Assembly: GCA_030704615.1 (NCBI GenBank)
Contig: CM060734.1
Span: forward strand, 47,306,001-47,370,000
Origin: Takakia lepidozioides
Taxonomy: Eukaryota > Plantae > Bryophyta
Direction: 5' to 3'
Length of the DNA stretch: 64,000 nt
Both the position numbers and the translations under genes were made by a program. Of this stretch, positions 1-62,404 are shown piece by piece; the first letter of the stretch is position 1, and every line of letters begins with the position of its first letter. The notes beneath the pieces were generated by a model, which was given only the letters and a program-made list of their open reading frames with translations, had not been told where the DNA came from and did not search any database.

Positions 1-373
1 CCAAGGAGAGGACGGGATTTTTTAGAGGCATAGTGGAACTGATGCATCACAGAGCTCGGAGGATGAGGGGGATGAGGGGGATGAGGAAGAAGGTGGGGCA
101 AGTTCCTTGGAGGGTGTAGGAGAGTAGTGCCCATTCTGGCTATGACAGTTAGAACACACTTGTATAGACGTGGCTTGCCACAAAATTTGCAATAAAATGT
201 TGCATTTCAAGTCCACTGGTGCCACATTCCAACTTCACATGACCCTATTTCCGTGCCTCCTAACCCTATTTCCGTGGACTCACAATGGTCTGCTCATGCT
301 TTTTTTTTTTCCGCTCATGCTCATGCCGCTCATGAAATAGCAGCCCCCAGGGCGAGGACCCAATGGTGAAGAA

Positions 374-3300
374 CTATGTTACTATTGTAATCAGCCAGGG
401 GATGTCCAGAATCCGCCCTTGGACATCCGAGCACGTCTCCATGAGGGTTTGGATGAAAGCAGGGCTCCGGGTCCGGCTGTACCGCCACGGTTTGCCTGTC
501 TTTGTGTCCTTCGGCATACTGGAGTGGGGCACATAGTTGTAGAGGACATCGTAGGTTACAGGGTCCACAACGGCATCAACAAGACGACCGTCGTTGCGGA
601 ATTTGAACGTAGACCCTCTCTTCACAAAGCAATATGCCTCAAACACCAATGTCTGCACATCCAACAAAGAAGGGATCAACTCCAGGGTCTACTTAACATA
701 CACCACAATATGAAGTGAATGCAATAGATTGATAACTTACACTTTGGCCCTCTGTTCGCAACCCCTGTGTACTGATGCAGAACCATTTTCTGAGGAGGAC
801 CGGGGTGACACTTTTCGGTGTCCACCTTGCCACCGCATTCTCTGTGGTCTTCCCTCTCGTGGCAAGGACAACCACACATCCACCGTCATCCAGAAGCATC
901 CCCGCCAGCCCAAACCCGGCTTTCCAGTAGTCCTCAGTAAACCTGTTCCAGGTGGGCACACCATCCAGGCCCTCCAGCAGCTCCCCATCTGGAATGTCGA
1001 GGAGAATCATGTTGCAAGCTCTCTCCACCTCAACCCCCCTCCCCCCCCCCCCCCGAGTGCTCTTGCAATTCGTGCTCACAGCCGTGAAGAATTCCATCAT
1101 GGCTTCAAAACCAGGGGTGTCTTTAGGCTCTGTACCGCCAGCCCTCTTCTTGGCTTTCCCCTTCTGCTCCGCCAGAGACTTGCTGTGTGCCACCTTCTTC
1201 ACAGCGAGAGCGTCAAGGAAGCTCTCATTGACGCATTGGATGATGGTTGGAGGTTCTAGCTTTGGCCTATGCGTAAACGTCACCGCCGTGTAGGCTCGCC
1301 CTCAAATGCCAACTTCTTGGCAGAGCCAGTCCCACTCCGAACTGACTTGGGAACCCGGACGACCGGTGACTGGGTAGGAGCAATAGCAGTCGCAGGACCT
1401 TGAACAAAGTCGTCGTCCGAGTCACTCTCTTGGGTCCCCTCCTGCGCCTCCTCCGATGCCCCGATGGTTTTCTTCTTTTTGGGTGTTACTGCACTCACCT
1501 GTTTCCTTGTCCTTTTCCTTTGGCCTTTACTCTTCTCATGCAATTTCTCCTGAATTCCTGCCTGAGCAAGCTCTGCCGCTTTCCTGGAGTTCACAAGCGC
1601 TTTTGCCTCTTTTGCACCCAACGGAGGCAGCGGAGCCCGGTTTCGTCGGAATTCAGCATCCAGCTTCAATTGAAACTCGGATGGGTCGAGCGAGCTGGGC
1701 GGAAGGTCCACATACCAAGGGCAATCACGCGAATGTTCCAGATGCCACTCCTTCACAATATCGTCAGTGTACATGGAGTCAGCCCCAGGGTTCCTCCATG
1801 CCAGGAAGAATGGTGGCTCGAAAGACAGATGACCTTTCTCCAAAATGGAGAACTTGCAGTACCTGCATTCATGAAAAACACAATGAGGTCCCTGAAATGC
1901 ATATTCGGCACCATTTTCCCAGGTTGGGGCGGATGTGAGTGGGCCTAGAAATGGAAAAATGGCGCCGAATTTCGGTTTTCGGTGACTGCCACCCTAGGGA
2001 CTTAGCCATCTTGGGAGCCCTGAACTGGAAATTCGGCGCCATTTTTCCCGGTTTGGCCCGAAGATGGCTAAGTCCCAGAACCGCAATAGGGCCTAGAACT
2101 GGAAAAATGGCGCCGAATTTCTAGTTCAGGGCCAGCCACCCTAGGGACTTAGCCCGAAAATGGCCAAGTCCCTGAACGGCAATAGGGCCTAGAACTGGAA
2201 AATGGCGCCGAATTTCCAGTTCGGGGCCAGCCACCCTAGGGACTTAGCCCGAAAATGGCCAAGTCCCTGAACGGCAATAGGGCCTAGAACTGGAAAATGG
2301 CGCCGAATTTCCAGTTCGGGGCCAGCCACCCTAGGGACTTAGCCCGAAAATGGCCAAGTCCCTGAACGGCAATAGGGCCTAGAACTGGAAAATGGCGCCG
2401 AATTTCCAGTTCGGGGCCAGCCACCCTAGGGACTTAGCCCGAAAATGGCCAAGTCCCTGAACGGCAATAGGGCCTAGAACTGGAAAATGGCGCCGAATTT
2501 CCAGTTCGGGGCCAGCCACCCTAGGGACTTAGCCCGAAAATGGCCAAGTCCCTGAACGGCAATAGGGCCTAGAACTGGAAAATGGCGCCGAATTTCCAGT
2601 TCGGGGCCAGCCACCCTAGGGACTTAGCCCGAAAATGGCCAAGTCCCTGAACGGCAATAGGGCCTGGAACTGGAAAATGACGCCGAATTTCCAGTTCAGG
2701 GCCAGCCACCCTAGGGACTTAGCCATTTTCGGAGCCCTGACTGGAAATTCGGCGCCATTTTCCCTAACACCACATGAGGCTTCTAACATCCTGAAATGCA
2801 AGGACTTGAAAGAAAGACAGCGCGTATGTACCTGTACAGAAGGCGCATTGCTGCTTTGTCCGCATTCGGCTGGTCGGTGAACTCGTGGCTCCGGCGAGCA
2901 TCTGCTATCTCCCGAAAGAATAGGTTGGTTTTGTAGAGCAGAAAGTACCTCGTCACATAGTCACGTAGGCTCTCTGCTGCAGGAGATATCTCCATCTTGA
3001 ACTGATGTGCTTGTGTGTCCAGCTGCTCTTGCGCATTCGTCGTCACCTGTGGAGATTCTCCATCAGATCGCTTTCCTGAAAAAATACAATGAATCCACCC
3101 CCTACTAGAGTAGAAGCCCCAAACGAAGCGTGGGGAAGTACCTGAAACCACCATGTCATGCGGTTCATCCACATGTCGAATGTGGGGTCAGAGAGTTTGT
3201 CCGGTTTGGGGAAGCTCCACATGTCCCTGGTACTTTGGGAACCATTCCAGATTTGGAGCCACCGGGTCTGTCCAACCACCCAACATATTCGTAAGCGCCA

Positions 3301-5471
3301 AACACCACAAAAAGGAGTTGTTGCCACCACAATTTGGTTAAGAATGTATCACCTTTTCTGTTGCATCCACACAGGATGTGGCTAGACGATGGAGCTTCTC
3401 CAATGTCATCGTGGGCTTCAGAGCGCGAGAGTAGTGCTTCCCCACCTCCACCAGAAAGTCGGCACCAAGGGCGGGATCAGCTATGGCCACGTACTTTACC
3501 ATCCGCGACTTGTACTTTATGCGGGCCCTCACCTCCGCAGCTTTGACATACGATTCGAGTTCCGGGAAGGTTGGATTCTTCTCCTCTGACTCCATGTAGA
3601 ACCTCCGCGCATGTGCCAAATCCTGCTGTATTTTCGTCTGTCAAGAATGCGTACATAAGATTAGAGATCTTGCTCAACACAATTTCTTCTATTGGGGGAG
3701 GAGACACAGATTAGCTCAACAAAACTGTCAGGAGCTTTACCCGAAATATGTAGTCCACCATGGCGTCGACGCTCAGCCTATACCAGGTTCTGTCTGCCTT
3801 TGCCTCCGACTTGCGCAGGAGGTCGGCACTGAGGGAATTGGCAAACTCTTGCACCCCCTGCTTCCCGACATCCTTCACTCGGAAGAGCATATGGGACAAG
3901 TTGGTGGCAATGAAGGCATTCTCAGTCACCCTGCAGTGCCACATTTCCATCAAACAATACTGAAATGGGAATTTTCATCATATATGAGGATTCGCAATGA
4001 AATGACTTCCAAATTCAAAGTCCAAAAGCGAGAGGGGTTGTAGCTTACGAGTTGATGTCGGCCATTGCAGCTTTGAGAAGACTGCGATCTTTGGGCCCCG
4101 CAACCTTCAGCACAACACAATCCACGGCAAAATGCCAATCGAGGTCTTGGGGTGGGCTTGGGCAATGTGCTCCATCCATGCCAGGAGGCGATGATTGCCG
4201 TCCCACACGTAGAACATCTTACCGGACAAGTGCTGGAAAAGAGGATCACTAGCAATCGATCTCTCGAACTCCTCATTTCGCGTTTGCCAATGGGGACCCC
4301 ATTTGTCCACCTCATCGGAAGTGTGGGCACGGGAAGCTCCGTGGTCGTTCTCAATGGAAACGTAAAACGCGGCAGACCACATTCGATATCCATCCCGGAA
4401 AGAGAATTTCAGCTTGTCGATATCGCCTGGGAGGGCAGGTCTCACCACCTGCAATGACACCAAGCGGCAAAGGGGAATTCGAAGCTTGGCTGGGTACACC
4501 ATGCCCCCCAGCACCCTGCCAATGTTGTTGTGGGTTGCCTCCAACATCTTGGCAGCGGCCAACTTCATATCCGCCTCAGACATGACGTCTGCTGCAGAGG
4601 GGTTTTCCGGCAGCCCACTAGGACCGCCAAATCCAGCCTGTATGCTCCGGGTTTGGGGCTTGGGGATGTCCGGGAGGATGTCATCCTGGTCAGAAAGCTC
4701 CCTGTCGTCCTCCTCAACAGGGTCAGCCGCCTGCGAAACCACCTCCAGCACTCTCCCCGTCTCTACTGCCCTCTCCCTGGCTTCACCTCAAACTTGCACA
4801 ATCCGTGCTCTTTCTGGTGTTCTTTCCTCTCCTCCACTCTCCACCGTATGGGTAATTGCGGGGGCTGCTCTTGCCCGCGATGGTCTAACCGGTGTGTTAC
4901 TGCCTCTCTGTGGTGTCTTGGAGGGATCCACCGTCTCTGTGCGTCCCTCGCTTACATTGGCATCTGTCATTTGGGCACCCTTGGCCTCTTCAGTGGCCTT
5001 TTCTCTTTCCTCCTGGCTAGCATTTTGTCTCGTCTGTTCTTTTGCCCTCTCTTTTGCCCTCTCACGGGCTTTCTGTTTCTTACTAGGGCTAGCAGCAGGG
5101 GAGCCCTCCAGGACGACCACCTTTGATTGAGGCGAATTGACACCCTCGCGCGCACTGCTCACTCCCCCCTCCGCAGCCCGTGACGGCTCTCTCGCCGGGG
5201 ATTGCATGTGCTTAGCTTTCTTCTTTTTCTTTGCGTGGGCGGGCCCTACTGCATGTGCATGAACAACCTCCATTGCCGGATCTGCTGTCCTCATGTCCTC
5301 ACGCCCTTCACCTGCCATGCCGCCTGCACCAACCTCCCCAATGCCTATTCTGTCGTACTCTCGTTGCAAGTCCTCCCGTCCACCAACAAAAGGTTGAAGT
5401 TTGCCCTCTCGCCCCAAGTTGGGCGATTCAAACATGCGATGAGTTGGAGCTGTGGATGATACCACCAGCAT
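374..5471 (-). pseudogene. Spliced gene: low-complexity N-terminus + ParB/Srx-like domain + helical middle + beta-class N6A/N4C DNA methyltransferase-like domain (disrupted)
   Basis: VWDGNHRLLAW, with DGNHR at 4188-4202. CNMILLDIPDG, with DIPD at 987-998 (motif IV-like). LAGMLLDDGGCVVV, and RSPAFIQTLMETCSDVQGRILD (motifs X/I-like). GT..AG introns at about 4048-3931, 3741-3690, 2830-1864 and 738-654. In-frame TGA at 4788 and several frameshifts. Confidence 0.6.
1940..2762. repeat. 95-bp tandem array (about 6 near-identical units plus degenerate flanks) inside a predicted intron
   Basis: TGGCCAAGTC recurs at 2161, 2256, 2351, 2446, 2541 and 2636. Each unit carries AACTGGAAAATGGCGCCGAATTTCCAGTT and AGGGACTTAGCC-n7-GGCCAAGTCCCT. 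Confidence 0.95.
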
Positions 5472-6219
5472 GCCGGGCTTGTCGTCACTCTGTCATTCCC
5501 AAAAATCGTGAAAACCAACATCGGTGCAAAAACCAGCATCGCAACGAGCAGCGCAACCACCATAGCAACAATCGTGTAACAAAAATGAAAACATAACAAG
5601 TTTAGGAAGTATGGAGAGCCATGCAACAACAATGAAAACAAATGCAACCATTGCCTGAGAATGACATGCACAAGCAGCCTTCTCCACAGCTGCCGGATTT
5701 GCACATGCATTGCAAACAATGTAAGGTTCACTCAACTATCTAAAGTTCACTCATCCAGCGAAGCCAGGATGAAGATGCAAAAACAAAGCGAGGCAACAAA
5801 GCGGAAGCAAAAAAGAAATCGAACAAAGCGAAAGCAAAAGTGGCTTGCCTGAGAGTACTCGGCTTCAGTTGGCGCGGGTTGTGAGCAAGACACTGGAATC
5901 TCCTGCTGGAGCTTCAGTTTGGCCATGCGAGAGATTGGCCGTCGTCCGTAGTACAGAGCTTTCAACTTCCGCCGCGGTCTGGATGTGAGGTCTCTCTTAG
6001 GAGAGCCATGCCCTTCAGGCGGCATAAGTCCCAGCCAAAATGGAAAAAGATCTCCGTTTTTGGGGTACATGCCTCGAATAGCATGTTAAGCCAAGATTAG
6101 CATGAGATTTAGGGTACGTATCCAGGAAGCCATGTGTCGCCAGCCCGAATGAAAACCGACGGCGGTGGACATTTATTGCCCAACTGCGCAATTAAATGTC
6201 AGATGAAGCCCTCCATGTC

Positions 6220-7860
6220 GGATGAAAATCGACGGAACTCGGCCCGGAATTTCCAACGTAGAGGTAATTCGGAGCGCTGCAGGATGGAAATCCGGCACCG
6301 GATTTCCATCCTGCAGGTAATTCGGAGCGCAGCAGGATGGAAATTCAGCGCCGAATTTCCATCCTGCAAGGTAGGGCGGCGCGTGAAATTTCCCTCACGC
6401 AGGTAATTCGGTAGCGGATGGATGCAAATCCGGCGCCGGATTTCCATCCGCGCAGGTAGGGCGGCGCGCCAAATTTCCCTGACGCAGGTAATTCAGAAGC
6501 GGATGGATGGAAATCGGGCGCCAGATTTCCATCCGCGCAAGTAGGGCGGCGCGCGAAATTTCCCTCAAGCAGGTAATTCGGAGGCGGATGGATGGAAATC
6601 CGGCGCCGGATTTCCATCCGCAAGGTTGGGCGGAGAGCGGATGGATGGAGATCCGGCGCCGAATTTCCATCCAGCAGGTAAGTCGGATCGCTGGCGGATG
6701 GATATTCGGCGCCGAATTTCCATTCGCCAGGAATTTCGAAACGCTGAATTACCTTCCTGCAGGTAATTCTGAGCGTGTCCGATTGATTTTTCGGATTTTC
6801 CTTGGAATCCTTCACTGCTAGAGGCAAATCGGAACAGCCTTGGACGGAAATTCGGCGCCGTTTTTCCATTCTGGGAGGTTTCTGCGACTTCCTTTGAGGG
6901 GGCCCCGATGGAAATTCGGCGCCGAATTTCCATCCGGGGGATGGTCTCTGTCGGAGAGGTGCCGGCCTCTCCGCCGCTCTGTTGGATATTCGGTGCAATA
7001 TGACGGCCAGGTGCCGGCCTCTCCCCCCTCCCCGACTGCATGGGAACGGCCCCGGATTGAAATTCGGCGCCGTTTTTTCCATCTGGGGAGGTTTTTATGT
7101 CGACCAGTTTTCGGTCTGACCCCCCGACACGACTTCCTTTGGGGGGGGGCCGGATGGAAATTCGGCGCCGAATCTCCATCCAGGGGATGTTCTCTGTCGC
7201 ACACGCGCCGGCCTCTGCGCCCGAGGCGACTTCATCCGGGCGTCCCCTGCTGGATATTCGGTGCCGAATTTCCGTCCGGGGGTTGAAATGTGACGGCCAC
7301 ATGTCGGCCTTTCCCCCCTCCCCGACTGCATCCGAACCGCCCCGGATGGAAATTCGGCGCCGTTTTTCCATCTGGGGATGTTTTTATGCCGGCCAGTTTT
7401 CGGCCTGACCCCCCGACACGACTTCCTTTGGGGGGGCCCGGATGGAAATTCGGCGCCGAATCTTCATCCAGGGGATGTTCTCTGTCGCACACGCGCCGGC
7501 CTCTACGCCCGAGGCGACTTCATCCGGGCTTCCCTTGTTGTATATTCGGTGCCGAATTTCCGTCCGGGGGTTGTAATGTGAGGGCCAAATGGCGGCCTTT
7601 CCCCCGAGCCGACTGCATCCGAAAGGCCTCGGATGGAAATTCGGCGCCGTTTTTCCATCCGCGTAGGTTTTTATGTCGGCCAGTTTTCGGCCTGACCCCC
7701 CGACAGGACTTCCTTTGGGGGGGATCCGAATGGAAATTCGGCGCTGAATTTCCGTCCGGGGGATGTTCTCTGTCGGACAGGTGCCGACATCTCTGCCCCA
7801 GACGACTTCATCCGTGTGGCCCCTGTTGGATATTGGGTGCCGAATTTCCATTCGGGGGTA
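6220..7860. repeat. Complex array of GGAAATTCGGCGCCGAATTTCC-type palindromes; about 288-bp higher-order units from about 6840
   Basis: Perfect 28-bp palindrome GATGGAAATTCGGCGCCGAATTTCCATC at 6907-6934 and many variants. Unit marker ...TCGGCGCCGTTTTTCCAT near 6850, 7060, 7350 and 7640. Confidence 0.9.
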
Positions 7861-8571
7861 ATAATGTGACGGCACGGTGCCGGCTTCTCCCCTTCAGCCG
7901 TCATCATCCGGACGGCCCCCCACTTTCTGACTGCATACCGTTGGCAGTTATTGCGCAAAGACCAGGGGCCGCATTCCGGAGACAAGGTTCATTAACACTC
8001 TGACTGTGGATTTTTTAGATAGTTGGCTCCCTGGATTTGGTCAGGCTTCGTCGCTCGGACAAATCGGCACCGCATTCCTTCCCATCGCTGCATCCCCCTT
8101 CTACCAGGGAGCTTCCCCGCATGCCATCCTGGTAGTCTTGTGTGCACATCTCCCATGGCGGAAAACTGAAGCGCTACAGTGTACTGCCCTCCTCACGAGC
8201 ATAGAGCTTCATTTCCGTGCAGAGGGGACATCTGCCGGGTGATGGAGAAATATTTGTGCGTTCGATACCACCTGAAACCGGGGTCGGTTTTTTTGGAGGA
8301 GGAAAGGAAGGACTCAAACGGCCTTGTTGTCTACTCTTCCTCTTCCAATTTCTTCTCTCTATTTTCATCCTCCAAGTTCTGCCCTTGGGTTTCTTCTTCA
8401 TTCATGTAACTCAACTGCAATGATGTTGGAGAGTCTGAACTCTCCGTTGGCTCTGCCACTTCTTCTCCTCCTTCTTCACCTTCCGCTTCAGAAACTGGAG
8501 ATCCTGCTTTTGGTGTTCTATGCCAACTCTTATCAAAGATTTCTGTCAAATCTTTTATCCAGGGATGTACC

Positions 8572-8817
8572 TCAGATCTTTTGATCTTCTTCCCGTACCA
8601 ATTCCCTTAATCTTTCTTGCAAAGAAAAAGAAGGAGTGGCATCCAACTCTAGTTCTTCCGGTATGGGTGATGTACTCTCTGATCTTAATGGTGTGAGAGG
8701 TCCAGATGATTCCCCTATGTCTATTCCTCTCTCCCAAAGATATGGATAATTAGCTTTCAGATAGCTTTCTCTTTTTGCTGAATATCTCTGGCGTCTAGCT
8801 TCTCTTTCATCACTCAT
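8572..8817 (-). CDS. Small charged orphan ORF, 81 aa
   Basis: ATG lies 21 bp after the stop of 8839-9534. Charged, helix-like sequence. Confidence 0.3.
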   Translation of the reverse strand: MSDEREARRQRYSAKRESYLKANYPYLWERGIDIGESSGPLTPLRSESTSPIPEELELDATPSFSLQERLRELVREEDQKI

Positions 8818-8838
8818 GTCCCATGTCTTTCATTTCTT

Positions 8839-9534
8839 TTAATGTGGCAATAACCAAAACTCTCTTCTGTAATATCTCTCGTATATGCCTGGGTTTTTTT
8901 CAAGCTTCAATGCACCCTTGGCTATACTAGAAGTCTCCGTTACCATATAACCATATGGCAAACAAGTTTGGAAAGCTGTTCTTGGTGTGAGTTTGATCCA
9001 CAAAATATCCTTTGGAATCCAATTCTTTACCAGTACAAGCTCTTCATGCATATGAGTAAAAACATTCACCTTCCTTTCCTCCCAGCCTTCAAACTCTACT
9101 CGCTTAATGGATAGCAATGTTATCACATAAACCAGTGTTGGTAACCAACGTGCTCTTCCTCTACAGGCCACCTGATAAATCTTTATCACTCCTTTCTCCA
9201 GACCCCACTCACCGTCAGCATCATGCACTCTCTTAAGAATGTTTTCTTTACAACCGTCTGGCAATTCCAAGAACCTCTGAAAGAATCGTTTGGACAATCT
9301 TTCCTTCTCAGTTTCACAAGGAATTTGATTCACATCAAATTCTTTAATTCTCCAACCACCATGATCCCACCAGATGTCTGTCACATCTGGTTGTTCATGA
9401 CCCAGTTCCCCAGTATGGTCGCCAAATGTTGCGCGGCTTTTGCTCACCCATCCCTTCGCTATCCGAGGCGGAAACTCCAAGATAGAAGAGTTGGAAATCT
9501 CTAAGCACTCAGCCCGCTCAGAACAATCAGTCAT
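8839..9534 (-). CDS. Intronless orphan ORF, 231 aa, unknown function (transposon cargo)
   Basis: Uninterrupted ATG-started ORF with globular-looking composition, followed closely by co-oriented ORFs 8572-8817 and 8331-8549. No motif recognised. Confidence 0.45.
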   Translation of the reverse strand: MTDCSERAECLEISNSSILEFPPRIAKGWVSKSRATFGDHTGELGHEQPDVTDIWWDHGGWRIKEFDVNQIPCETEKERLSKRFFQRFLELPDGCKENILKRVHDADGEWGLEKGVIKIYQVACRGRARWLPTLVYVITLLSIKRVEFEGWEERKVNVFTHMHEELVLVKNWIPKDILWIKLTPRTAFQTCLPYGYMVTETSSIAKGALKLEKNPGIYERYYRREFWLLPH

Positions 9535-9989
9535 GACCTACAGCTAGTGTATCATGGGGGTGTTTCCTATTTGTTTTCCTTCCCGCATTCATGTTAGCTA
9601 GTTACCTTATTGTTGGTAATTAAGTATCAGTTTGCTTCAGCAATCTATCGGATTCCATCAACTCATCCATTCATTCCACAGTGTGAGTATGAAACTGCTT
9701 GCATTCATCAAGCATCAACAGATCGTCCTCCTCCTACTCTGTGCTCTCCCTCCTTCCGCTCAGAGATGCGCTCTCTGCCTCCTTTCCTCCCCAGTGATGT
9801 CCGAAGTCTCCCCCCAAGAAGGGTGTCCCCCAGAATTGATTCATTTCCAGTCCTTGCTCCTGGCTTTATCTTCCTACCCGTTGTTATAACCGTTTCCCTC
9901 ACTAACCGTCATCCGTGAACTAATATGTTCCATTCGCAGATGTTGTTCCCCACGGTCGTTCCCTGTCCTGCTATCCGTTCCATATGGTC

Positions 9990-10225
9990 GTGACAGCTGT
10001 GTCAAGCTGTGACTGGCTGTGTGAAACTGTGACCGGCTGTGACCGGCTGTGTCGGGCTGTGACTGGCTGTGCGACTGTGTTGGGCTGTGTCGGGCTGTGT
10101 CAGGCTGTGACTGGCTGTGTGGCTGTGACGGGCTGTGTTGACTGTGACTGGCTGTGTTGGCTGTGTCGGGCTGTGTTGGACTGTGACGGCTGTGACGGGC
10201 TGTGATGGACTGTGTTGGGCTGTGT
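9990..10225. repeat. GGCTGTG(AC/TC)-type minisatellite
   Basis: Degenerate ~10-bp units (GGCTGTGACT, GGCTGTGTCG) repeated about 20 times. Confidence 0.9.
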
Positions 10226-11515: not shown

Positions 11516-11539
11516 GTTTAGGGTTTAGGGTTTAGGGTT
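11516..11539 (+). promoter_or_regulatory. (TTTAGGG)3 telomere-like / telo-box tract upstream of the transposase
   Basis: gtttagggtttagggtttagggtt. Any regulatory role is inferred. Confidence 0.4.
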
Positions 11540-12751
11540 GAAAGTTGAAGGTCTATGTGTTAACTAAAGGCAGACTGTGTTTCAGGGATGTTTTTATCCT
11601 CTATTTGAATTTAATCTTGTTTGATTGATCCTGCAGGTTTGTGCGTTTTATCTGGTATTGCAAGGGCTTGATACAGTTGGTAAGCATTTTCTTTTAACAG
11701 AGGGCGGTTTTGTTTAGCCTGGTTTTCTTAATGTAGGAGCATTTCCCCATTTGAGGGTCCTGTCAATAGAAGGTTGGACTTGTGACCAATAATTTGTATT
11801 CTAGAACTTTAACACAAAGTCTGTCATATACTGAAATCGAATTTGATGAAACTGTGGGAGGAAGATTTATTTACCTGGCGATGATGCAAAGATGGTTGCA
11901 GCCAGACCAAATAACAACTTTAGTGGTGCACAGACATGTGGTTTGCCCGGAAGAGGTTGACTGGCAGCACGAGGGTGAATTCCATTGCCCTCGTTGGCAG
12001 GGGATGTACATCCTTCAAGCGTCTTCCATATTGAAGGTTATGTGTCAACAATGTGTATTCAGTGCAACAAAAACAACAGCTCGCACATGAACTTTGTCAA
12101 ATTCTTTGCCAACTTCGCCCTTCCTTCATCAAGGTATTTGGTATTCCAGCCAGGACGTCAAAAACTTAGAGCTTGGCTGAAGAAAAAAAACAATCAAGAA
12201 CTAGGGGATTAGAAAGTATGTTCTGAATGGGGAGGGTGGTGGTTGATTGTTGCACATGTTAATTCATTTTTGTCGAGGTATTTGAGAATGGATATGGATG
12301 CAAGCTTAAAAGGGGAGAGCTGCCACATCTTCTAAGCGGACTTTGACTTGACAAGCAGGTAGGGCAGCGCTGTCAGTGAGGCCTGATATATGCCCACCAG
12401 CGTATGTGGACGAGTTCGCTGTACTGCAGGTAAGCAACATTTGAGTTCCATTCATGTTTAGAGTTTTGTCCATAGTGGTTCAGTTTCTCCTAGTTATTCT
12501 TCCTTGCATCTAACTAGATGTTCTTTCTGCTCCAATGTCTGGCAATCTATGAGTGGTTGAGTACCCATGTTCAGGAACTCGTTATGTTTCGGATTACTGA
12601 CAACATCACTCCGACACCATCCGATAGTTGAAGTGTCAAGTCACGACAAACACATTACTTGAGGGATCAGCTGCCATCCAGCGGAAACCTGGGCCATTTT
12701 GAGTAATCACTTGACCTCCTCTTCCCCTAGGAAGTCCAGACTCCACGAAGA

Positions 12752-15634
12752 ATGTCGGAGGAAGAATATCCTCAACCGCAACCTGGGTGGACCATTCACC
12801 AAGCCCTACTAAAGGAGATATATCTTTACCAGGGACTGGGATCACCATGCCACCTAGTGGAACTCCAAGATTATATGCTTAGGCAACTCTTTGGAGGTAT
12901 AGCAACTGAACATGATGTACCTGAAAGATTCGACAACCTGAGCATTGGAAAGCTTTTGAGTCATTTGCCTCATGACTCGGATGGTTACTTGGATGGATTT
13001 AAGGCCCCCACGAGCTGGAAGACAATGATGGATCTGTATATTGAACTGGGGGCGGTAGAGACAAACAGATGGCGGATGTGTGTGGGAACTGAAGCCTATC
13101 CACATGAGGTTGAAGTCATTAGGCCTAGCACCGAAGATGCCTATGAAACTGGGCATGTGCAACAGTGTGATTGTGACCTGCCAAGAAATAGACGGGAATG
13201 CACAAATTGTGTGGAGAGATGTAGGCGATGTATGATGATGAGGAAAGAGATGGTGGCTTTTGATTATTTACCGTTTGCTCCTCAATTTGCACTTCTTATG
13301 CGGTCAAGAAGCCATTCGTATGCGATGCTGGCCATGTGGAGAGCTCGAGATCAGTGGTTGGGTAAGGGTGTTGGGGACGTGCCTACCACCATAAAGGACT
13401 TTTGGGATGGAGTGAAGTTGCGTGCCTATCAGCAATTTTGGGATCCGGAGTCACAATGGGAACTACCTGTCCTTTGCAGGAATCCACAATGTGGGCAGAG
13501 CTACAAAGCATTTCCAGGAAGGTGCGAGGTATTGGAGGGTGCATGGGATCCACATAGAATGCTATATGATTTTGAATGTACGCGTTGTAGACAGCCAATC
13601 CTCGCTCGCAGAGTAATGGTGAAATGAGATCCGAGAAATATTGCAATCATGGCCCACTGGGATGGGTTCTCATCCACTCGACACACGAATCGTGGGTTGT
13701 AGAGGTGAAAATCTTGAATGTAGACAAAGATAGTGATTTAGGTCTCCTTCCTATTCTTTTCATCCCTTTGGACTCTATTCACGACGGACTTTTGGATAGA
13801 GTCAAAAATTCTAAGATTGCTTTCTTGAAGCCGTTAATTGAGGAATTGCAAGGTTCCTTCTTAGATGGATTTGAAGCACCTATTTCATACCCTCCTCATC
13901 TAATCTCTCCTCATCTACCAGATGAGGAGATGACCACCACTTTGAGGGTGATCCTCATGCTATTTGCAGGGGACCACCCTGCCCAATGTAGCATTGGGAT
14001 GGTCAAACAATCAGGCAAATCTGGATGTAGACGATGTATCATGCAATCGACAGCCCGTGATGGGAGGTATGTTTACGATGGGAACAAGAGACAATTACTA
14101 AATCCACCACCAAGACGCACATCTGAAGCATTGTACACCAGTGTGCGAGCATGGAAGCGTGCATCTTCAGAAGAAGAGAAACGTCAAATTCTGCAAAAGG
14201 GGGGCATATCGGGAGAGTCTGCTCTTTGGACTTTATACCATTTATATGGGTTTGATATAAGCCAGGACTTGACTTACGATGTAATGCATATTGCCAGTTT
14301 GAACTTGTTCAAGTCTTTCATATCAAAATTATTTCTGGAGCTTCAAGGTGATGCCAATGCTCTTCAGGATGTGGCCAAAGTGTGTAAGGCAGTAAGCGCA
14401 GCCTTATGAGCTTAGAAATGGTCGGTGGCCTTACAAGCCTGTGGATAATCACAATTCATTCTTGGGTGAGGAACACCAGCATTTTATTCAATGGATGTTA
14501 CCAAGCATTCTAAATGTTCTCCAGGGGCGGATCAGCGAGGAGCGGAGAGTTCTTGGACTCATCATGATTGACATTGCCCACTTCTTGTTCAATTATTGCA
14601 GGAGATGGGGTTGGACATCAGAGGTCCTTAACATTGTTCGGACCTTATTTGCCACTTGGAGAGTCTGCTCAGAGGAATTGGATGGTCCCAATGGAGCTCC
14701 CTTAGAGCATGTGGCCAGTGCAGGGCACATCCTTGAGGATGTGGTACGATTTGGGCCTCATGAATTGTACTGGTGTTTCCCATACGAGAGAGAGATTACT
14801 CGCTACCATCGAATCAATACAAATAGAAAACAAATGGAAGTTTCATTCATCAAGTACTATTCCCGCCGTTTGTTCACACAAGTTCAAGGTCATGTCTTCT
14901 TGGACAGAGATGGTATGCAGGGAGCCCAAAGGGATATTCTTGCAATTCATGCAGTGTTTATGTTCCCGGAAGGTGCTTTTTTCGAGGTTGGCAGAGATAT
15001 TGCTTGTCAAGCATGGCATTTGAAGTGCGTGTTGAAGGTCACTTCTATCCAAAAAGCGCTTGAGTTATGGAAAAGGCTCAAAGCCTTGGAAGGCATGACA
15101 TGCCTGCAATTGATGAGAAGGAAAGGAATACTACTTGGTAGGAAGAATGACAAGGACCTCCTCGTAAATATGGATGAACATACACACACGTATCTACAAG
15201 AGCACTTGATGCAGACTGGAGTCTTAGGCGCCTGGAATGTGGGATCTTTTCACACAACCATCAAACTGTACAATTCAGTGTTGCTCAGAGGAATTCTCTA
15301 CAAGTGTGAGGACAATGTGGTTGTTCAGGAGAATGTGGAGCATTCGACACCATACAAAGCAAAGGTCAAAAGCATATTCTCCTATGATTTTGGAGAAGAG
15401 ATTCATTTGTTTTTCGCTGCTGATTACTATCTGCATTTGCAAGATGCCCGAGGCCATATGATGGTTGACATGGTTGACAGGGGTACTGGAATGCACGTGA
15501 TAGTGACCAACTGCATGGTCCAATTTGACCACACATGCATTCGACCATTGATTTTCATACAACATAAGTTCATGCTAATTCCTTCCATCCATGGACCAAA
15601 TCACAGTGTGGCTTATGAAATGCAAGACAAATAG
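12752..15634 (+). pseudogene. EnSpm/CACTA-type (TnpD/Tnp2-like) DDE transposase with C-terminal BAH-like segment
   Basis: DPRNIAIMAHWDGF reads on after the TGA at 13625. Also FAGDHPAQ...GCRRC, YDVMHIASLNL and FGPHELYWCFPYERE. Stop at 13625, frameshift near 13680, and a break near 14407. Confidence 0.85.
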
Positions 15635-17019
15635 CCACGGAGCGTGCAAGTTGCTGCACATGGGGTACTATAGAAACCGCATTTTCGGGTCATCTCATGG
15701 TAGTTTTGCCCTTTGCAGCTATGCAGAAATGTACAGAGATGTGAGGGCAGCAGTGGACCTTTGCCAAGGAGATGGCACGCTGAAGCAGGCTGTCGCTCAG
15801 AACCCCAAAGCAATACATAAGTCATAGAGATGAAATTAGAAGGGCATGTTTGGACTTCACCTCACATGCAGTTTACCCATGGTTGATGTGAGCAGCTATC
15901 CAGGATTCCCTTGACTTGATTTTAGACTTTCCAATATGCTTCCGATATGGTATGTTTTGTTTGTAGTGTGCGAAGCGCAGACTCAGTAGCCTTAGATGGA
16001 ACTGCAGACATGTGTGAAGAGGGATCAAAAGACGCTACCCGTATTTGTTCCTTGAGGTTTTTCCCCCTTTTTGTAATGGGCTCCGAGTAATAGGGTTGTT
16101 TTCCCATTTGAGGGTTTTTCCTCCTACTTTGTGTTTTTTTTCCCCGTTGAGTAAAATAGTCCTTCAATAAAGTAATTGGCCAACGCCTTTTATTAATTTT
16201 CTTAAAAAGTAGGCCTTCAGCTTTTTTCTTTTTCAGTTTATCCCCCGTGAATTTCATTACTCGTGGTTTTTTTGCCCGGAAAATACCCCCCATGTTGGTT
16301 TTTTCCCAAAGGGTGTATGATGTTTTTAGCACATTGAATTTACTTTAATGAAAATGCCGATGTGCCACATTCTCGAAGTGGAGAAATATTAGCAAATTTG
16401 TTCATGCACAGTGGAGAATTTAATTCACCAACTGGACGAGCATCAACACCTGGAGAAATGGGGCATATGTCTAGTTTCACGATACGGTGATCTGACCAAA
16501 CCTCCCTGTGGGAGCAAACATAATTCATTTGGACCCAAAACCACAATTTTGCACTCCAAACTTCATTTGTGTTCAATTTCATGCACTCTTCATAAAGAGT
16601 TCTGCAATAGTGAGCGAAGAGAACACTTTTTTTTTGGGGCATTTTTGATTGGTCCAAATTTTGGCGGGGGAGTAGCGGTGGGATGCTTGAAGCCGCAGAA
16701 CAAAATTGAGCCAAAAAAAAAATCGATGCGTGCCAGAAACCCCCAATGAAAGGCAGTGCAAACCTATTTATTGGCTTAAAATTAATTAAATTCAATTAAA
16801 TTGTGGAATGGCTTGAGGGGTGAGCGCGTCGATGGGGAGGCAATGATTTATTCGTCTAATGTGTCTCCGCACATGTGTCGCACACGTGTTCCAGCACATG
16901 GGGGCAAAAGAGGGGCTTCAACCACATCCGTTCAATGGGTACAATAGTCGTGCACGCATTGCAGGATCTTTTTTTCGCATTGAACAAAAACCAGATGACA
17001 AGTGAACGCCTCATTGGAC

Positions 17020-17430
17020 AATTGAACGAATTTTGATTGATCTCGTATTACACTGGGACGTATCAGAGGGTACATTGAACACACTGGCCAAGTTTCAAAG
17101 CGAACAAAAATCATTTGGATGGGCAACCATCCGTTGGCCCATTGAACGAATTTCGATTGATCTCATATTACTCTGGGGCCTCTTACATGGCACATTAAAC
17201 ATAGTGGCCAAGTCTCAAAGCAAACCAAAATCATTTTGATGGCCAACCATCCGTTGAGCCATCGAATGAATTTCGATTGATTTCATATTAATCCGGGACC
17301 TGATACATGGTATGTTGAACATAGTGGCACAGATTGAAAGCAAACGAAAATCATTTGGATGGGCAACCATTCAATCGCCCATTGAATGAATGAGATTTCG
17401 TCTTTGATTATACTGGGACCTGTTACATGG
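17020..17430. repeat. 120-bp tandem repeat, about 3.4 diverged copies
   Basis: ATTGAACGAA-like starts at 17021, 17141, 17261 and 17381. Confidence 0.85.
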
Positions 17431-17449
17431 TTGTGTCATTTGAAGTTTT

Positions 17450-17740
17450 TTTTGTAGTGTCTCCTGTTTCGTAATGCGGTGCTTCTCCATGTCCACTTTA
17501 TCCAATATGTTGATGTTTTCCACCTGGAACAGATCCACACATGTGTGCAGAAATCCTTAAATAAGCAAATGACCATCTCCACTTTTATAAGCCTCATCCC
17601 CAGCTTTCAGTTTTGATGGTCATTTAATTTTTTAAGTCTTTATATACGCATGTGTGGATATGTTCCAGATGGAAAATATGAACGTTGGAAAAATAAGAGT
17701 TAGAGAAGCACCTCATTACGAAGCAAGAGACATTACAGAA
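17450..17740. repeat. Imperfect inverted repeat (MITE-like foldback)
   Basis: TTCGTAATGCGGTGCTTCTC...CTGGAACAGATCCACACATG is mirrored by CATGTGTGGATATGTTCCAG...GAGAAGCACCTCATTACGAA. Confidence 0.7.
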
Positions 17741-18479
17741 GATCTCAGCATGTTGAACATCTGGATGAAGAACCTTACCCATCGTCGCTTCAAAGTTCAA
17801 GCGCTTATGAAATGATCACATGTTTGTCGGTGAAAGTTCATCTCGTAGGCCACATTGATCTCGTACCCATCGAAGACTCCCGTAGGCCACATAGAACGGT
17901 TCATGTGATACATTTTCACAAATGCGATGTGATACATTTGTGAAATGGTATCACATCAACCGTTTAATGTGGCCAATGCACCTCTTCCGCACCATGGCGG
18001 AAATGTTCGTCAGTTGAAAGCACAAACACAAATAATCCGTGCAAACAATCTCAAGAATCATATGTACTGCAAGGTGTTTCATACTGCCGATGTTCATGTA
18101 GCTGAATTATTTATGAATCGTTTTGCTACTCCCATGCCAACAACATCAGGTCCACTGCGACTGCCATATTCCGAATTCCGTATCAGCCACCACAGACATG
18201 AAACCAGGAATTTCGCACAAAATCTCCAATTCATTCAATTTATGGTGGTCCGTGGCTGATACGTTCGTTTGAACATGACAGTCTCAGAGGACGTTGGCGA
18301 GGGAATAGCAAAAAGAGTACTACAGAATTCAGTTAGAGGAACAACAATAGCATGAAACACCTTACCGTAAATATGATTGTTGACATTGGTTGTGACAGCT
18401 CTAATCAATAGAGAACTCGCACCATCAGTTGCGCTCCAGCAGCAGTACCGGTCCCCCGAGTAAATAAAGTTCCGTTGTA

Positions 18480-18985
18480 AATAATAAATTGCATACGCTC
18501 GAACCTCACAGATGTCATTTCAACAAAATCGGCCGTGTATTGTGGCACTGTTTGTAACTTCGAATGTTTCAATGTTTCTGACATGGTATTGAGAAAATGA
18601 TATATTGGTTCCCTAGGAGTTAGACAACAAACGTTCCATATCTCATTCAAATGTCGACACTACCATGAGTGGTGTGGATAAAAAAATAATAGGTGTATAT
18701 GCGACCTCCGGACATTCAAGTAGACCATTCGTTGGACCTAGTATCAAACGTTCGGACTTCGGAGGTCGCATGTGCACCCATTACTTTCCGATCCATGCAG
18801 CCTCTCATGGTAGTGTCGCACAGTTGAATGAGATATGAGACGTTTGTTGTCTAACTCCTACGGAATTAATATATCGTTTTCTCATAACCCTATCCGAAAC
18901 CTTGGAACATTACAAATATAAACTGTGAACTAGTACACAAACCATTTATGTGCGAGGGTCGAGCATATGCAATGTAATATTTACA
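18480..18985. repeat. Long imperfect inverted repeat (arms about 230 bp)
   Basis: TAGGAGTTAGACAACAAACGT...CACTACCATGAG...GCGACCTCCG is mirrored by CGGAGGTCGC...CTCATGGTAGTG...ACGTTTGTTGTCTAACTCCTA. Confidence 0.85.
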
Positions 18986-19199
18986 ATGAGATTTTATTTA
19001 TTACATGCACAATCAAAATTGAGTTATGTTTTCATAAAAGAACCATTGTACCGCCACAAATCTCATATCTACGAGACTATGGTCTACTCCGTCCTATATA
19101 CGTCTTTCGGCTCAGGCCAATTGAATGACTTGCCTATGAACCGAAGTACTACATGGGCTAATGTGACTCTCTCATTCTTGTTGTTGTCGTACAACCTTT

Positions 19200-20270
19200 G
19201 TAGCATTGAGTGCTAACAACCTCCCGTAAATTGGTTCTCGAACATATTTTCATCATAATGAGCGCCGCCATTTATTCATATCGCTATCTTCCCAACGGCA
19301 AAGGCCTCCGACGTCATGTCCCTGGGGGAAGGGGGGGGGGGGGGGAGGGGGGTGGCATTCGCATTGAAAACTGATGCAATATCTTTTTCCACCCACCATC
19401 TTTTTGCGAGTTCTCGGTCCAGCTTGTCTTGGTTTTCAAACTAGTACGGCGAGGCTTTGCGTATGCCTAATGGGGTGGCTAAGCCCCAATCATACACCCC
19501 AATCTTGATCTCCTTGGTGTCATCTGGAAAATGCAACAAGATGTTGTCGAGGGACAAGTCGTTGTGCAGGAAACCGTTCTTGTGGACAACATCCATGATG
19601 CACACCAGTGCCCATGCAAGTTTACTGCGCATTTTTTGGAAACGAAGCAAGCGATCGAATTCCTGGAACTTCCCCTCTGTTCCAAAATCACCCCGTTGTT
19701 CGAATCGTTGCCCCATTTTCTATCAAGGTTCATCATGTCGCGTATTGTCCCCCCATTCCACCAGCGAGTGTAACCCTCTACCTCACGTGCATTCACAGCA
19801 AAATATGAGATGACACCCGGATGTTGGAACTTCACTGCCAACACGCCGCATTAACTCAGCTTTGGCGGAGGGCACTCGACCCTCGGTTGCTCTACCCTTC
19901 CATGTCTTCAGTAGCTACCTCAAATTCCACGTGGAGTCTTTTGCTTTGCTTTGGATCCACCGATTGAACTTCGGTTTGTCCCTGTCCGCCGTCCACTTAG
20001 CCCCCGCCAAAACGTTTGTCATTTTCCTCTCCATATTTTGCTAAAAAATCTGAAACCCCTCCCATCCATGCCTGACATAAGCACTCTCCAGCCTCATCAT
20101 GTCCATACCCTTGAAATAATCCACTACCACTTCTTTCACTCTATCCAAGGCATACGGTCTTGGATAGTCTGACTTGTTGATCTGGCTATCCCGCTCATGG
20201 GCACGTTTTCTCTTCTTCCGACCCCCAGACGACCCCGCCCCAGAACTGGAATTCACAACCCCTGACATTG
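19200..20270 (-). pseudogene. Divergent protein kinase (frameshifted), transposon cargo
   Basis: Across frames: Gly-rich GGG*VDGGQG, QHPGVISY, LHNDLSLDNILL, YDWGLAT, RWWV and SEAFAVGKIA. N-terminal NLS-like RKKRKR. Confidence 0.75.
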
Positions 20271-20899
20271 TATAAACCTTTGCCCACTCCAGGGTCCAAA
20301 ACCTCAGAAAACGGCAATGGACGCGTGTGGATGGTGTCTTCGTAGTTTCTGCAAAAAAAACAGGCCGCCGGAGATCCGAAAACGGCAAAATGGTGATACG
20401 ATGATTGAACCGTGAACAAGGGTGTTGGACTGACCAATAGAAAACCGACAAAACCTCTCTCCCCAACCTTCCCAAATAATCACCTTTGCACCTCCCATTG
20501 GAAGTGCCGAGCAACGAAGTCCGAAAGGACTACAGGATGCGAAAGAACCGCACCACGAGAAGGGCAAAAGTGATCAGAAAAGGAGGGGGGAATGGTTTGT
20601 ATAGGCGCCCACCAGCCCCCCCCCCCCCCCCCAAAAAAAAAATGACATTATGCTTGAAAAAGAGCAACAGGCCAGTGGCGCCTCGCCACGTGTCCGCACG
20701 GCACGACTGGCCAGTCGCACCTCGCCACGCGCACCCACATGGGAGAGGTCAAGGGTTCAAAACCACCTTCCCCTATCCCGTTTGTTTTGTTTTTCCTGAC
20801 CCGTGGCACCTCGCCACGTGGCTGGCCAGGCACTGCTTCAATTTAAAAAAAAAAAAAAAAACGCCCACGGTGGTCCCTGGATTTCTAAGAAAAAAAAAA

Positions 20900-21750
20900 A
20901 AAACGTGACCGTCGCTAAACAAGAAGAGCGACCATCGTTGTTTTTAAAAAAAATATATATTAAATAAGCGACTGCCTACTGGCGGTCGCTTAATTCAAGA
21001 TTCAAAATATAAATAAGCGACCACCGCTAAATGGTGGTCGCATCATTTAAAAAAATATGTTAAGTAAGCGACCGCCAAACGGCGGTCGCTTAATTTAAGA
21101 ATCAAAATCAAATCGAGCAACCGCCTCCAAATGAAGGTCGCTGTATTCTTTATTAACAAAAATAGCAAACGGCCGCCAAATGGCGGTCGCTGCATTTTTC
21201 AAAAATTTACTGAAGAAGCGACCGCCAAACGGCGGTCGCTTTATTTAAGAATAAATAAAAATGAGTGATCGCTACTAAATGGCGGTCGCTAAATTAAATA
21301 AATAAATAAATATAGCGACCGCCACATGGCGTCGCTAAATTAAATAAATAAATAAATATAGCGACCGCCACATGGCGGTCGCTGTATTTTTACAGAATAT
21401 ATCAAAGATATAATAATAACAATATAATAAAGTGCAAGCGACTGCCAATCTAGGCGGTCGGTTCATTTAAAACATAATAAACTTCAACCGACTGCCAATA
21501 TAGGCGGCCACTTATTTTAAAATATAATAAAATACAAACGACCGCCAATATGGGCGGTCGCTTCATTTAAAAATAAATAAATTACCGGCGACCGCCAATA
21601 TAGGCGGTCGCTTAATTTAACAAAATATTAAATTACAAGCGACCGCTAATATGGACGGTCGCTTTTATTTAAAAAATAATAAGCTCGCTCCCACGTTTCA
21701 TTTAAAATAAATAAATAAATATGCGACCGCCAATATAGGCGGACATATTT
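20900..21750. repeat. Subterminal repeat array of AGCGACCGCC-n3..6-GGCGGTCGCT palindromes in AT-rich spacers
   Basis: About 15 copies at roughly 50-55 bp spacing, e.g. AAGCGACCGCCAAACGGCGGTCGCTT at 21066. Confidence 0.9.
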
Positions 21751-21956
21751 TAAAAAAGAATTAATAAATATTAATAATTGGTCACGTCTGTTTTACACCG
21801 TGGCTGCCATATCATTAGAAAGGGTAGAAGTAAATCGTAAAAGTCAAATGTGAAAAAATTACATGGATAAACGTCCGGATTGGACGTGACGTGACGTATG
21901 TCGGACGAGACGGCCGACGTGTCAACGCCACGTCACGTCAGGAATGATAACTAGGG

Positions 21957-29635: not shown

Positions 29636-29727
29636 AAAAAAGGTTGCTGGTGGAAGCTTGAATGAAGAAACGTAATAATAATATTATTATTACGTTTCTT
29701 CATTTGGGCTTCCACCAGCAACCTTTT
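29636..29727. repeat. Near-perfect spacer-less palindrome (about 92 bp) at the junction of a ~190-bp tandem duplication
   Basis: AAAAAGGTTGCTGGTGGAAGC..AATGAAGAAACGTAATAATAAT | ATTATTATTACGTTTCTTCATT..GCTTCCACCAGCAACCTTTTT. Confidence 0.9.
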
Positions 29728-62297: not shown

Positions 62298-62404
62298 ATG
62301 AATCTGAGGAACCTGAGTGTGATGAGCTGCAAGGAGAAATTGAATTCAATCAGTATGGAGGCAACAGTGAGATTGTCACAGAAAGGATGCAAAGGGAGCT
62401 ATTG

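Follow-up and report, generated by a model that had tools for sequence, protein, structure and literature searches.

A ParB-like/methylase-like fusion gene with palindrome arrays beside a probable CMC transposase in a dead transposon block of Takakia lepidozioides

We analysed a stretch of 64,000 nucleotides from the bryophyte Takakia lepidozioides (contig CM060734.1, positions 47,306,001 to 47,370,000 of the forward strand), hereafter called the window. Positions 1–21956 form a block that holds a decayed gene for a ParB-like/methylase-like fusion protein, GC-rich palindrome arrays upstream of this gene and inside it, a transposase pseudogene of the CMC (EnSpm/CACTA, Plavaka-like) type and one transposon terminus. 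No similarity to retroelement proteins was found anywhere in this block, and it has no DNA in common with the remaining 42 kb of the window, which also contains Ty3/gypsy and copia coding sequences. The block is best explained as the right-hand part, at least 22 kb long, of a dead DNA-transposon insertion within a copia element. The original prediction had described it as one uninterrupted non-retroelement block that belongs to a single giant element. The absence of retroelement sequence agrees with this description, whereas the evidence falls short of a single element, and the G+C content changes from 51–63% in 1–8000 to 39–50% in 8500–22000, with a break near 8 kb.

The right edge of the block is sharp. 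The sequence ...GGAATGATAACTAGGG ends at 21956, and coding sequence for a copia-type ribonuclease H follows immediately from 21957. Read inwards, the terminus (21941–21956, minus strand) is the 16-mer CCCTAGTTATCATTCC. This 16-mer has a single exact occurrence in the window; the only other match, at 12488 in intron-like sequence, has three mismatches, which is chance level. A subterminal region at 20946–21760 carries about 15 palindromes of the form (A)GCGACCGCC-N3-6-GGCGGTCGC(T) in A+T-rich spacers. Their 9-mer half-site has 30 matches at one mismatch, compared to 4.3 expected, and nearly all of them lie within this region. The block thus has a short subterminal motif arrayed in direct and inverted orientation, as found in CMC elements, and the CCCTA-type end with subterminal repeats had been correctly recognised. 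Probably, these palindromes bind a transposon protein. As neither a second CCCTAG terminus nor a second block of subterminal palindromes occurs here, the left end must be outside the 64 kb or lost. The target-site duplication and the second half of the copia element likewise fall outside the window.

The transposase pseudogene lies on the plus strand at 11770–15631 and is assigned to the CMC-type DDE transposases by sub-threshold Pfam matches and by its relatives. It consists of a possible 5' exon (11770–12087) and three open reading frame (ORF) pieces (12731–13624, 13591–14406 and 14396–15631, in frames 2, 1 and 2). Every Pfam match of these pieces belongs to the CMC group, the best weak match being Plavaka (expect value, E, 0.0096), followed by Transposase_21 (E 0.016), both below the curated cut-offs. 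Transposase_21 also matches the relatives P0001 (E 3.6e-5) and a 440-amino-acid ORF of locus L002 (E 5.3e-4), still below the cut-offs. The transposase family is scarce, with three relatives at 38–40% identity in the searched database. The three parts share one frame in L002 and occupy separate frames in the window, which shows that the window copy has two frameshifts. By eye, a GDHPAQ...C..C stretch can be seen at 13969–13986 (plus strand), which in our reading may be the Tnp2-type signature around the second catalytic Asp. The ORF pieces, their sub-threshold Pfam matches and their relatives agree with the predicted EnSpm-type transposase. With plant CACTA/EnSpm elements (En/Spm, Tam1, Caspar) and fungal Plavaka elements the block shares this putative signature, a short terminus followed by hundreds of base pairs of subterminal motifs in both orientations, and internal tandem repeats. 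It differs from them in that its terminus reads CCCTAG and not CACTA, its Pfam matches are sub-threshold, no TnpA-like second gene was recognised and only one end is seen. Three tandem plant-type telomere repeats (TTTAGGG) lie at 11517–11540, about 250 bp upstream of the possible 5' exon.

The fusion gene is found on the minus strand, from about 5492 down to about 377. Searches of the window's minus-strand ORFs against Pfam, NCBIfam and PDB sequences returned no ParB or methylase match, a word-index homologue search using the methylase-like ORF returned no relatives, and the gene was recognised via its homologues. Its 5' part (4110–5492), identified by homologue search, comprises a low-complexity N-terminus (4791–5492), an in-frame TGA (4788–4790) and the ParB/sulfiredoxin (Srx)-like domain (4110–4505), with PLCRL at 4461–4475 and DGNHR at 4188–4202 (within DGNHRLLAW). 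Middle pieces at 3714–3974, 3341–3640, 3046–3348 and possibly 2786–3187 were placed by tblastn collinearity with moss-like, Riccia and ENA loci. A conserved middle/C-terminal piece (1283–1993) contains WRNP at 1787–1798 and PWYVD at 1706–1720 and matches the Riccia protein P0108 (BLASTP, E 5e-5). Two pieces of the methylase-like C-terminal domain follow: 696–1301, which has DIPDG at the motif-IV position (984–998) and matches Adiantum C-termini in BLASTP, and 377–688, which ends at the start of motif I with GRILD (404–418) and then a stop. The pieces 4110–4787, 3714–3974, 3341–3640, 3046–3348, 1283–1993, 696–1301 and 377–688 keep their order in many foreign loci (tblastn), and we thus treat them as one gene. 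As the frame hits a stop right after GRILD, the loop that binds S-adenosylmethionine (SAM) is destroyed in the window copy, and the gene is further damaged by the in-frame TGA and by overlapping pieces in different frames. Both the fusion gene and the CMC transposase of the window are dead, in line with the decayed copy that had been proposed.

The homologues establish what the window copy no longer displays. An exhaustive HMMER search with ORF 4110–4787 as query yielded 379 cluster representatives at E<=1e-3. They share an N-terminal domain of about 115 residues (query residues 100–214) with PLCR, a near-invariant GNH core and conserved Trp residues; within the DGNHR motif, 65 sequences keep G, N and H with few or no exceptions, and in the 12 closest D and R are almost invariant as well. 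Named family members are known from two ferns, Adiantum nelumboides and A. capillus-veneris, and one liverwort, Riccia sorocarpa. A metagenome scan with an alignment of 12 close sequences added 170 more relatives in one group of moss-like contigs, presumably from peat-moss-associated samples. The Adiantum proteins P0081 (605 amino acids) and P0132 (651 amino acids) contain the N-domain as well as a C-terminus that matches window ORF 696–1301 (E 1e-9 and 1e-8). In the Riccia protein P0156 (1207 amino acids), the order is N-domain, WRNP...PWWVD block (corresponding to window 1283–1993), LDLPTG segment and a C-terminal DFAGGWGAT-type loop. This fusion architecture has been kept in the liverwort, the ferns and the moss-like contigs, so that the ParB-like/methylase-like fusion of the original prediction is real. 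According to the best explanation of these alignments, the intact protein would have about 1,200 amino acids, with an N-terminal ParB/Srx-like domain and a C-terminal domain resembling circularly permuted (beta-class) N6-adenine/N4-cytosine DNA methylases.

For the N-domain, there is no Pfam model, and no Pfam, NCBIfam or PDB sequence match was obtained for the ORF or nine homologues; a 65-sequence profile searched against PDB gave nothing relevant. An AlphaFold (AF2) model built from 65 sequences reached a predicted local distance difference test (pLDDT) score of 88. In PDB, the top Foldseek matches of this model are sulfiredoxin, Noc, Atu1540, SbnI and ParB, with E of 0.4–5 and template-modelling scores of 0.34–0.46, which are individually insignificant. 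The BFVD list is headed by phage ParB/sulfiredoxin and ParB-like nuclease proteins (probability up to 0.89). The top of both lists consists almost purely of ParB/Srx proteins, with no significant match, and the domain has a DG(H/N)HR-type motif before a helix with conserved Ala/Trp, as in the ParB/Srx group. Since the top Foldseek lists and the DG-x-HR motif point in the same direction, a ParB/Srx-like fold is likely but not proven.

The C-terminal domain can be followed further in the family. Pfam N6_N4_Mtase (PF01555) matches the motif-I end of the Riccia proteins P0154, P0156 and P0157 with 23.7–26.2 bits (cut-off 26.7), and precomputed PF01555 matches exist for four other Riccia paralogues. 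A 24-sequence family profile had nine matches in PDB, all nine to beta-class N6-adenine/N4-cytosine DNA methylases, including CcrM (6e-4), DpnA (7e-4), RsrI, the rotifer N4-cytosine methylase (N4CMT) and MboIIA. The family thus has homology to the SAM-binding motif I, in a region that is broken in the window copy. The permuted order is also present, as in P0156 and P0157 some 170 residues separate LD-x-P-x-G from the DFAGGWGAT-type loop that follows it, and a second, weak CcrM alignment follows the DPPY region of CcrM. The catalytic loop itself deviates. Motif IV reads DLPTG, DLPSG, DMSSG, DVPFG or DFPIG in the relatives and DIPDG in the window, that is D-[LIVMF]-[PS]-x-G, and the canonical (D/N/S)PP(Y/F/W) is absent from all members. 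With a non-canonical catalytic motif throughout the family, marking of DNA with N4-methylcytosine (4mC) or N6-methyladenine (6mA) is doubtful. Judging from these motifs, binding of SAM or DNA is a more likely function of the domain than efficient methylation, and the protein would be a homologue of ParB–methylase fusions with doubtful catalytic competence. In UniRef, several members (P0154, P0156, P0157 and other Riccia paralogues) are named 'Trimethylguanosine synthase', which looks mis-annotated; we rejected this identity since the Pfam and PDB profile matches are only to beta-class DNA methylases.

Prokaryotic and phage methylases that combine PF02195 and PF01555 resemble the land-plant family in their ParB-like N-terminus, their permuted beta-class amino-methylase C-terminus and their carriage by mobile elements. 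The land-plant family differs from them in having no Pfam ParBc match, a replaced DPPY-type motif, about 600 additional amino acids in a middle region, and introns. No prokaryotic relatives were found in one narrow pattern scan of 185,579 genomes.

The fusion gene is accompanied by dense palindrome arrays, which had also been noted in the first inspection of the sequence and are found at 6187–7893 and 2009–2863. The upstream tandem arrays (6187–7893), with periods of 53, 85, 96 and 288 bp, lie 0.7–2.4 kb upstream of the gene and contain 11 copies of the palindrome GGAAATTCGGCGCCGAATTTCC (core TTCGGCGCCGAA) at 6347–7836. The intragenic array (2009–2863) consists of about 7–9 copies of a 95-bp unit that are up to 99% identical, and is very young; each unit carries a half-degenerate palindrome (GGCGCCGAATTTCC), of which eight copies lie at 1961–2679. 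Together, the two arrays contain 17 matches to GGAAATTCGGCGCCGAATTTCC, with 0 expected. For comparison, we fetched 90 loci, which represent about 50 independent places. In loci L088 and L012, tandem arrays that lie upstream of the fusion gene contain the 12-bp core TTCGGCGCCGAA again. At no more than one mismatch, it has 16 matches in 947 kb of fetched loci, compared to a mean of 0.18 for 40 composition-matched palindromes; 13 of the 16 fall in L012 and L088, mostly upstream of the gene. In Riccia, ten copies of TTCCGGCGAG-N-CTCGCCGGAA occupy the 1-kb spacer between the fusion gene and a divergently transcribed partner gene, and a further array, which carries the palindrome GTCCAGCGGAC-N-CCGCTGGAC, is situated downstream of the fusion gene (about 14632–15166). 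Locus L090, from another ENA assembly (49.6% domain identity), has five copies of GGTCGG(A/G)TCCGACC upstream of the gene and five inside it, and this layout of an upstream and an intragenic array matches that of the window.

In total, five lineages (the window, L088, L012, Riccia and L090) have arrays of 10–19 copies of a lineage-specific palindrome beside or inside the gene, at 31–50% protein identity of their ParB-like domains to that of the window. Four of the five have related or identical half-sites (TTCGGCG / TTCCGGCG); the half-site of L090, GGTCGG, has only TCGG in common with them. That the arrays are tied to the gene in five lineages supports a self-recognition module. By analogy to ParB and its parS sites, we infer that the fusion protein may recognise its own arrays. 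The original prediction had suggested that the element binds or marks its own DNA; the physical tie of gene and arrays is as expected of a self-binding or self-marking module. Marking by 4mC or 6mA is doubtful given the motif described above. Most variant copies of the core (window 6344–7748; L012 and L088) have CpG-to-TpG/CpA changes (TTCGGTGCCGAA, TTCGGCACCGAA), a deamination signature expected of methylated, silenced DNA.

Alternatively, the arrays might be ordinary satellites or repeats similar to miniature inverted-repeat transposable elements that lie near the gene by chance and are functionally unrelated to its protein. CACTA-type and other DNA transposons often contain tandem repeats, A+T-rich arrays without an evident relation are found at many moss-like loci, and the CpG-to-TpG decay is what neutral methylated DNA undergoes. 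Chance proximity fits poorly with 10–19 palindromes at the gene across lineages that are so diverged, with the related half-sites in four of them, and with the excess of core matches and their concentration upstream of the gene in L012 and L088. We thus consider this alternative improbable.

Which transposase travels with the fusion gene was examined in the fetched loci, up to 10 kb on each side. None of the about 50 independent loci has a CMC transposase near the fusion gene, and among the compared loci the two are linked only in the window. Only one CMC relative lies on a long contig, with 24.7 kb of context, and the transposase is all that it has in common with the window; it has no fusion gene, arrays or kinase, and it yields no informative terminal arrays. 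In one ENA assembly (ERZ25073694; L002/L083, L087 and L088), the CMC transposase family and the fusion gene with its partner module are present on separate contigs, unlinked.

In Riccia, three copies of the fusion gene on two chromosomes (CM100801.1 twice, CM100799.1) are embedded in repeats that are 97.5% identical over 10.7–13.5 kb and have sharp shared ends (L084 5031–15850, L085 3688–17186 and L086 6209–14102; left end ...CCGTGTTGCATCAC, right end ...TTACATGGTCTC). This identity and the common ends show that the fusion gene is carried by a young multi-copy element, which confirms the proposal that the gene is transposon-borne. The ends of the Riccia element have no terminal inverted repeat. 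The ratio of nonsynonymous to synonymous substitution rates (dN/dS) among the three recent copies is 0.65–1.15, which shows neutral decay after insertion and is uninformative on function.

A host gene, or a captured fragment of one, could also give rise to a fusion gene inside a transposon block, as CACTA elements often capture host fragments. Some loci have no transposase within 10 kb, and a dN/dS of about 1 among the Riccia copies could be read in the same way. Against this stand at least 26 Riccia paralogues spread over many chromosomes, the near-identical Riccia repeats that extend over more than 10 kb and include the neighbouring transposase-like gene, the 170 relatives in one moss-like metagenome set and the lack of a single-copy orthologue pattern in the family. 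A host origin of this kind is therefore very improbable.

Instead of a CMC transposase, a different gene accompanies the fusion gene. In nine locus groups (L084, L085, L087, L088, L016, L036, L044/56, L045/46/65 and L055), a partner gene lies upstream on the opposite strand, in head-to-head orientation. The partner homologues in L087 and L088, which are the closest flanked relatives of the window gene, match with E of 1e-34 to 1e-38, and homologues occupy the same position in five moss-like locus groups. The partner has a Cys/His finger (WRKY/FLYWCH-type), a core that we read as D...D...E with a C-x2-H motif, and a SWIM finger; in Pfam, SWIM (E 0.0065) and, on the core, the ZSWIM1-3 RNaseH-like domain (E 0.18) match below threshold. 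From these motifs, the partner is probably a Mutator-like transposase. In an N-domain tree (FastTree, supports not inspected), the partner-linked loci are scattered and the window gene clusters with L087, L001 and L088. No trace of the partner was found in the window at E<5. The fusion gene was ancestrally paired head-to-head with a different transposase. The fusion gene and its companions had further been described as dedicated accessory genes of an EnSpm/CMC family, with homologues that occur independently of the transposase named as counter-evidence; such homologues are what we find in all of the about 50 loci. As far as these sequences can tell, the fusion gene moves as an accessory module and does not belong to the fixed gene set of the CMC family.

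With moderate confidence, we interpret the block as a CMC element together with a separable mobile module that is nested in it or was recently captured. The first component would be a CMC/EnSpm Plavaka-like element at about 8.2–21.96 kb, with its twice-frameshifted transposase, a kinase-like fragment, foldbacks and the right terminus with subterminal palindromes. The second would be a mobile accessory module from 1 to about 8 kb, that is the decayed fusion gene with GC-rich palindrome arrays upstream and inside. Its protein would bind its own arrays and act in cis on the chromatin, the expression or the inheritance of the element. In the case of nesting, the module would have inserted into the CMC element as a derivative of its usual carrier without a transposase; in the other case, the CMC element would recently have captured the module. 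We lean towards nesting.

Alternatively, the whole block is one giant EnSpm/CMC (Plavaka-like) element in which the ParB–methylase gene, the arrays and the kinase are standing accessory genes. In favour of this reading, neither retroelement sequence nor a second pair of termini is present within 1–21956, the gene, the arrays and the transposase are in divergent order, and the best weak Pfam match of the transposase is Plavaka. A precedent for such an element comes from the red alga Bostrychia moritziana, where giant Plavaka elements of 17–19 kb carry the accessory genes PAG1–3 (bioRxiv 10.1101/2025.02.11.637652). PAG2 combines an N6-adenine methylase with SET, PAG3 combines ParB with a 2-oxoglutarate (2OG) oxygenase, and tandem arrays of inverted repeats adjoin PAG3 (10.1101/2025.02.11.637652). 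These accessory genes move between transposon families, and other red algae have them in Mutator, Zisupton and Fanzor elements (10.1101/2025.02.11.637652). A standing accessory role is opposed by the about 50 independent fusion-gene loci without a CMC transposase, by the related 24.7-kb CMC locus that lacks the fusion gene, the arrays and the kinase, by the pairing of the nearest relatives with another transposase, by the break in G+C content near 8 kb and by a left end that lies outside the window. In our view, a single giant element is possible but rather unlikely.

Several observations weigh against the interpretation as an element with a separable module. Only a single copy of the block was seen, an exact look-up of ten window ORFs having found no sister copies in the searched collection, so that capture by a CMC family, which would make it one true giant element, stays compatible with the data, and the red-algal precedent shows that such capture happens (bioRxiv 10.1101/2025.02.11.637652). 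The divergent layout of gene, arrays and transposase mimics the layout with the usual partner and could mean a functional replacement. Between 8 and 12 kb there is no boundary of a nested element, and no inverted-repeat pair that would bound a CMC element nested inside 7.9–22 kb was found. The Mutator-like assignment of the partner is based on sub-threshold matches and motif reading, and the partner is missing from 14 locus groups whose upstream flank is 6 kb or longer. For the protein itself, the ParB/Srx fold matches are individually insignificant (E 0.15–5), Pfam ParBc gives no match, modelling of the methylase domain by AF2 from 24 aligned sequences gave an unusable result (pLDDT 38.7), and binding of the arrays is a prediction.

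The block contains further features besides the fusion gene and the transposase. Three ORF pieces on the minus strand (8334–8606, 8575–8829 and 8842–9537) have no detectable relatives; they have no Pfam or NCBIfam match and belong to no ORF family common to any fetched locus, consistent with the orphan ORFs that had been reported. A 120-bp tandem repeat lies at 17014–17430, followed at 17509–18911 by at least six clustered local foldbacks whose arms measure 41–100 nucleotides at 76–85% complementarity. A decayed protein-kinase-like fragment is found on the minus strand at 19444–20529 (HNDLSLDN at 19543–19566, DWG at 19483–19491). Its piece at 19444–19719, 92 residues that extend from the catalytic loop to DFG only, matches Pkinase (E 6.5e-6, 26.2 bits, cut-off 31.7), and it has frameshifted neighbours. 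The predicted kinase is thus represented by a Pkinase fragment, but the match is sub-threshold and the related CMC locus has no such gene. An inverted pair of poly-G/poly-C runs of 26–32 nucleotides (19325–19356 and 20607–20632) brackets the 1.25-kb kinase segment, which looks as if it were a separate inserted or captured unit. A BAH domain, which had been suggested as a chromatin reader, has no Pfam match on any ORF.

Elsewhere in the window, direct repeats at 35431–35802 and 40685–41060, 97–98% identical and 5.25 kb apart, flank Ty3/gypsy gag-protease-reverse transcriptase ORFs (37403–40648, minus strand) and are probably the two long terminal repeats of a young element. An inverted duplication of about 0.9 kb (25812–26680 and 42290–43165) is 87–98% complementary with its copies about 16 kb apart. 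Further repeats link 29511–31272 with 46665–47214 and 53709–54070, and copies of other repeat families occur in both orientations. ORF 61847–62392 (minus strand) starts with a plant eIF4A-like DEAD-box N-terminal segment, diverges further on and is probably either a pseudogene or a fragment that was captured. With its Ty3/gypsy and copia elements, this eIF4A-like fragment and the TTTAGGG repeat, the window is plant-like and not human in content.

The original prediction could not judge novelty, and the red-algal Plavaka elements are a close precedent. Both systems involve very large DNA transposons, accessory proteins with ParB or ParB-like domains and N6-adenine-methylase or methylase-like domains, inverted-repeat arrays beside the ParB-domain gene (here in the window, L088, L012, Riccia and L090), movement of accessory genes between superfamilies and mostly degenerate copies. 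They differ in that the ParB-like and methylase-like domains are here in one protein, whereas in the red alga ParB is joined to a 2OG oxygenase and the methylase to SET; no 2OG, SET or PAG1 counterpart was found among the ORFs scanned with Pfam. The hosts here are land plants (the liverwort, the ferns and the moss-like contigs), the usual carrier looks Mutator-like, and the linkage to a Plavaka transposase, which is regular in the red-algal cassette, is here seen in the window only. The likeness of PAG2 and PAG3 to the land-plant family is one of described domains.

The working principle has a parallel in Arabidopsis, where VANC, encoded by the Mutator-like VANDAL elements, is an anti-silencing protein that recognises short repeated motifs in its own element and changes the epigenetic state of that element. 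The likeness is limited to this principle, as VANC has no sequence relation to the fusion protein and no ParB or methylase domain. To our knowledge, accessory genes for the recognition or modification of a transposon's own DNA are rare, with VANC as the one worked example; a comparable role for ParB- and methylase-domain proteins was proposed in 2025 for the giant Plavaka elements of red algae. Among bryophytes, amino-methylases of the prokaryote-type N4/N6 class are also known from Marchantia, where MpDN4MT1a/b are N4-cytosine DNA methylases with a canonical TSPPY, encoded by host genes that are expressed in sperm (bioRxiv 10.1101/2021.02.12.428880); neither a ParB-like domain nor a transposon context has been reported for these enzymes. 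In a review of eukaryotic adenine methylases, a land-plant clade that combines ParB with a permuted methylase is not listed (PMC4738411), and we found no land-plant report of such a module in the literature searched.

These comparisons allow a broader, tentative proposal. Non-seed land plants may harbour a portable and so far undescribed module for self-recognition that consists of a ParB/Srx and permuted-methylase-like protein and 10–20 cognate GC-rich palindromes, and that hops from Mutator-like to CMC/Plavaka-like elements. The module would act in cis by ParB-like binding, spreading or clamping, or by an unusual base modification, and could thereby escape silencing or aid inheritance; it may share ancestry with the red-algal PAG2 and PAG3. 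If so, the window would give the first example from land plants of a CMC element that captured such a module.

The window copy is a relic, and the interest rests with the gene family and its arrays. A family of hundreds of members in liverwort, fern and moss-like sequences with palindrome arrays in a conserved arrangement, extends the red-algal idea to land plants, with a fused architecture, and suggests that transposon superfamilies exchange the module. The methylase-like domain is relevant to the debate on DNA marks other than 5-methylcytosine in plants, where the non-canonical loop calls for caution. The apparently full-length Riccia gene model and the obvious candidate binding sites make the idea testable.

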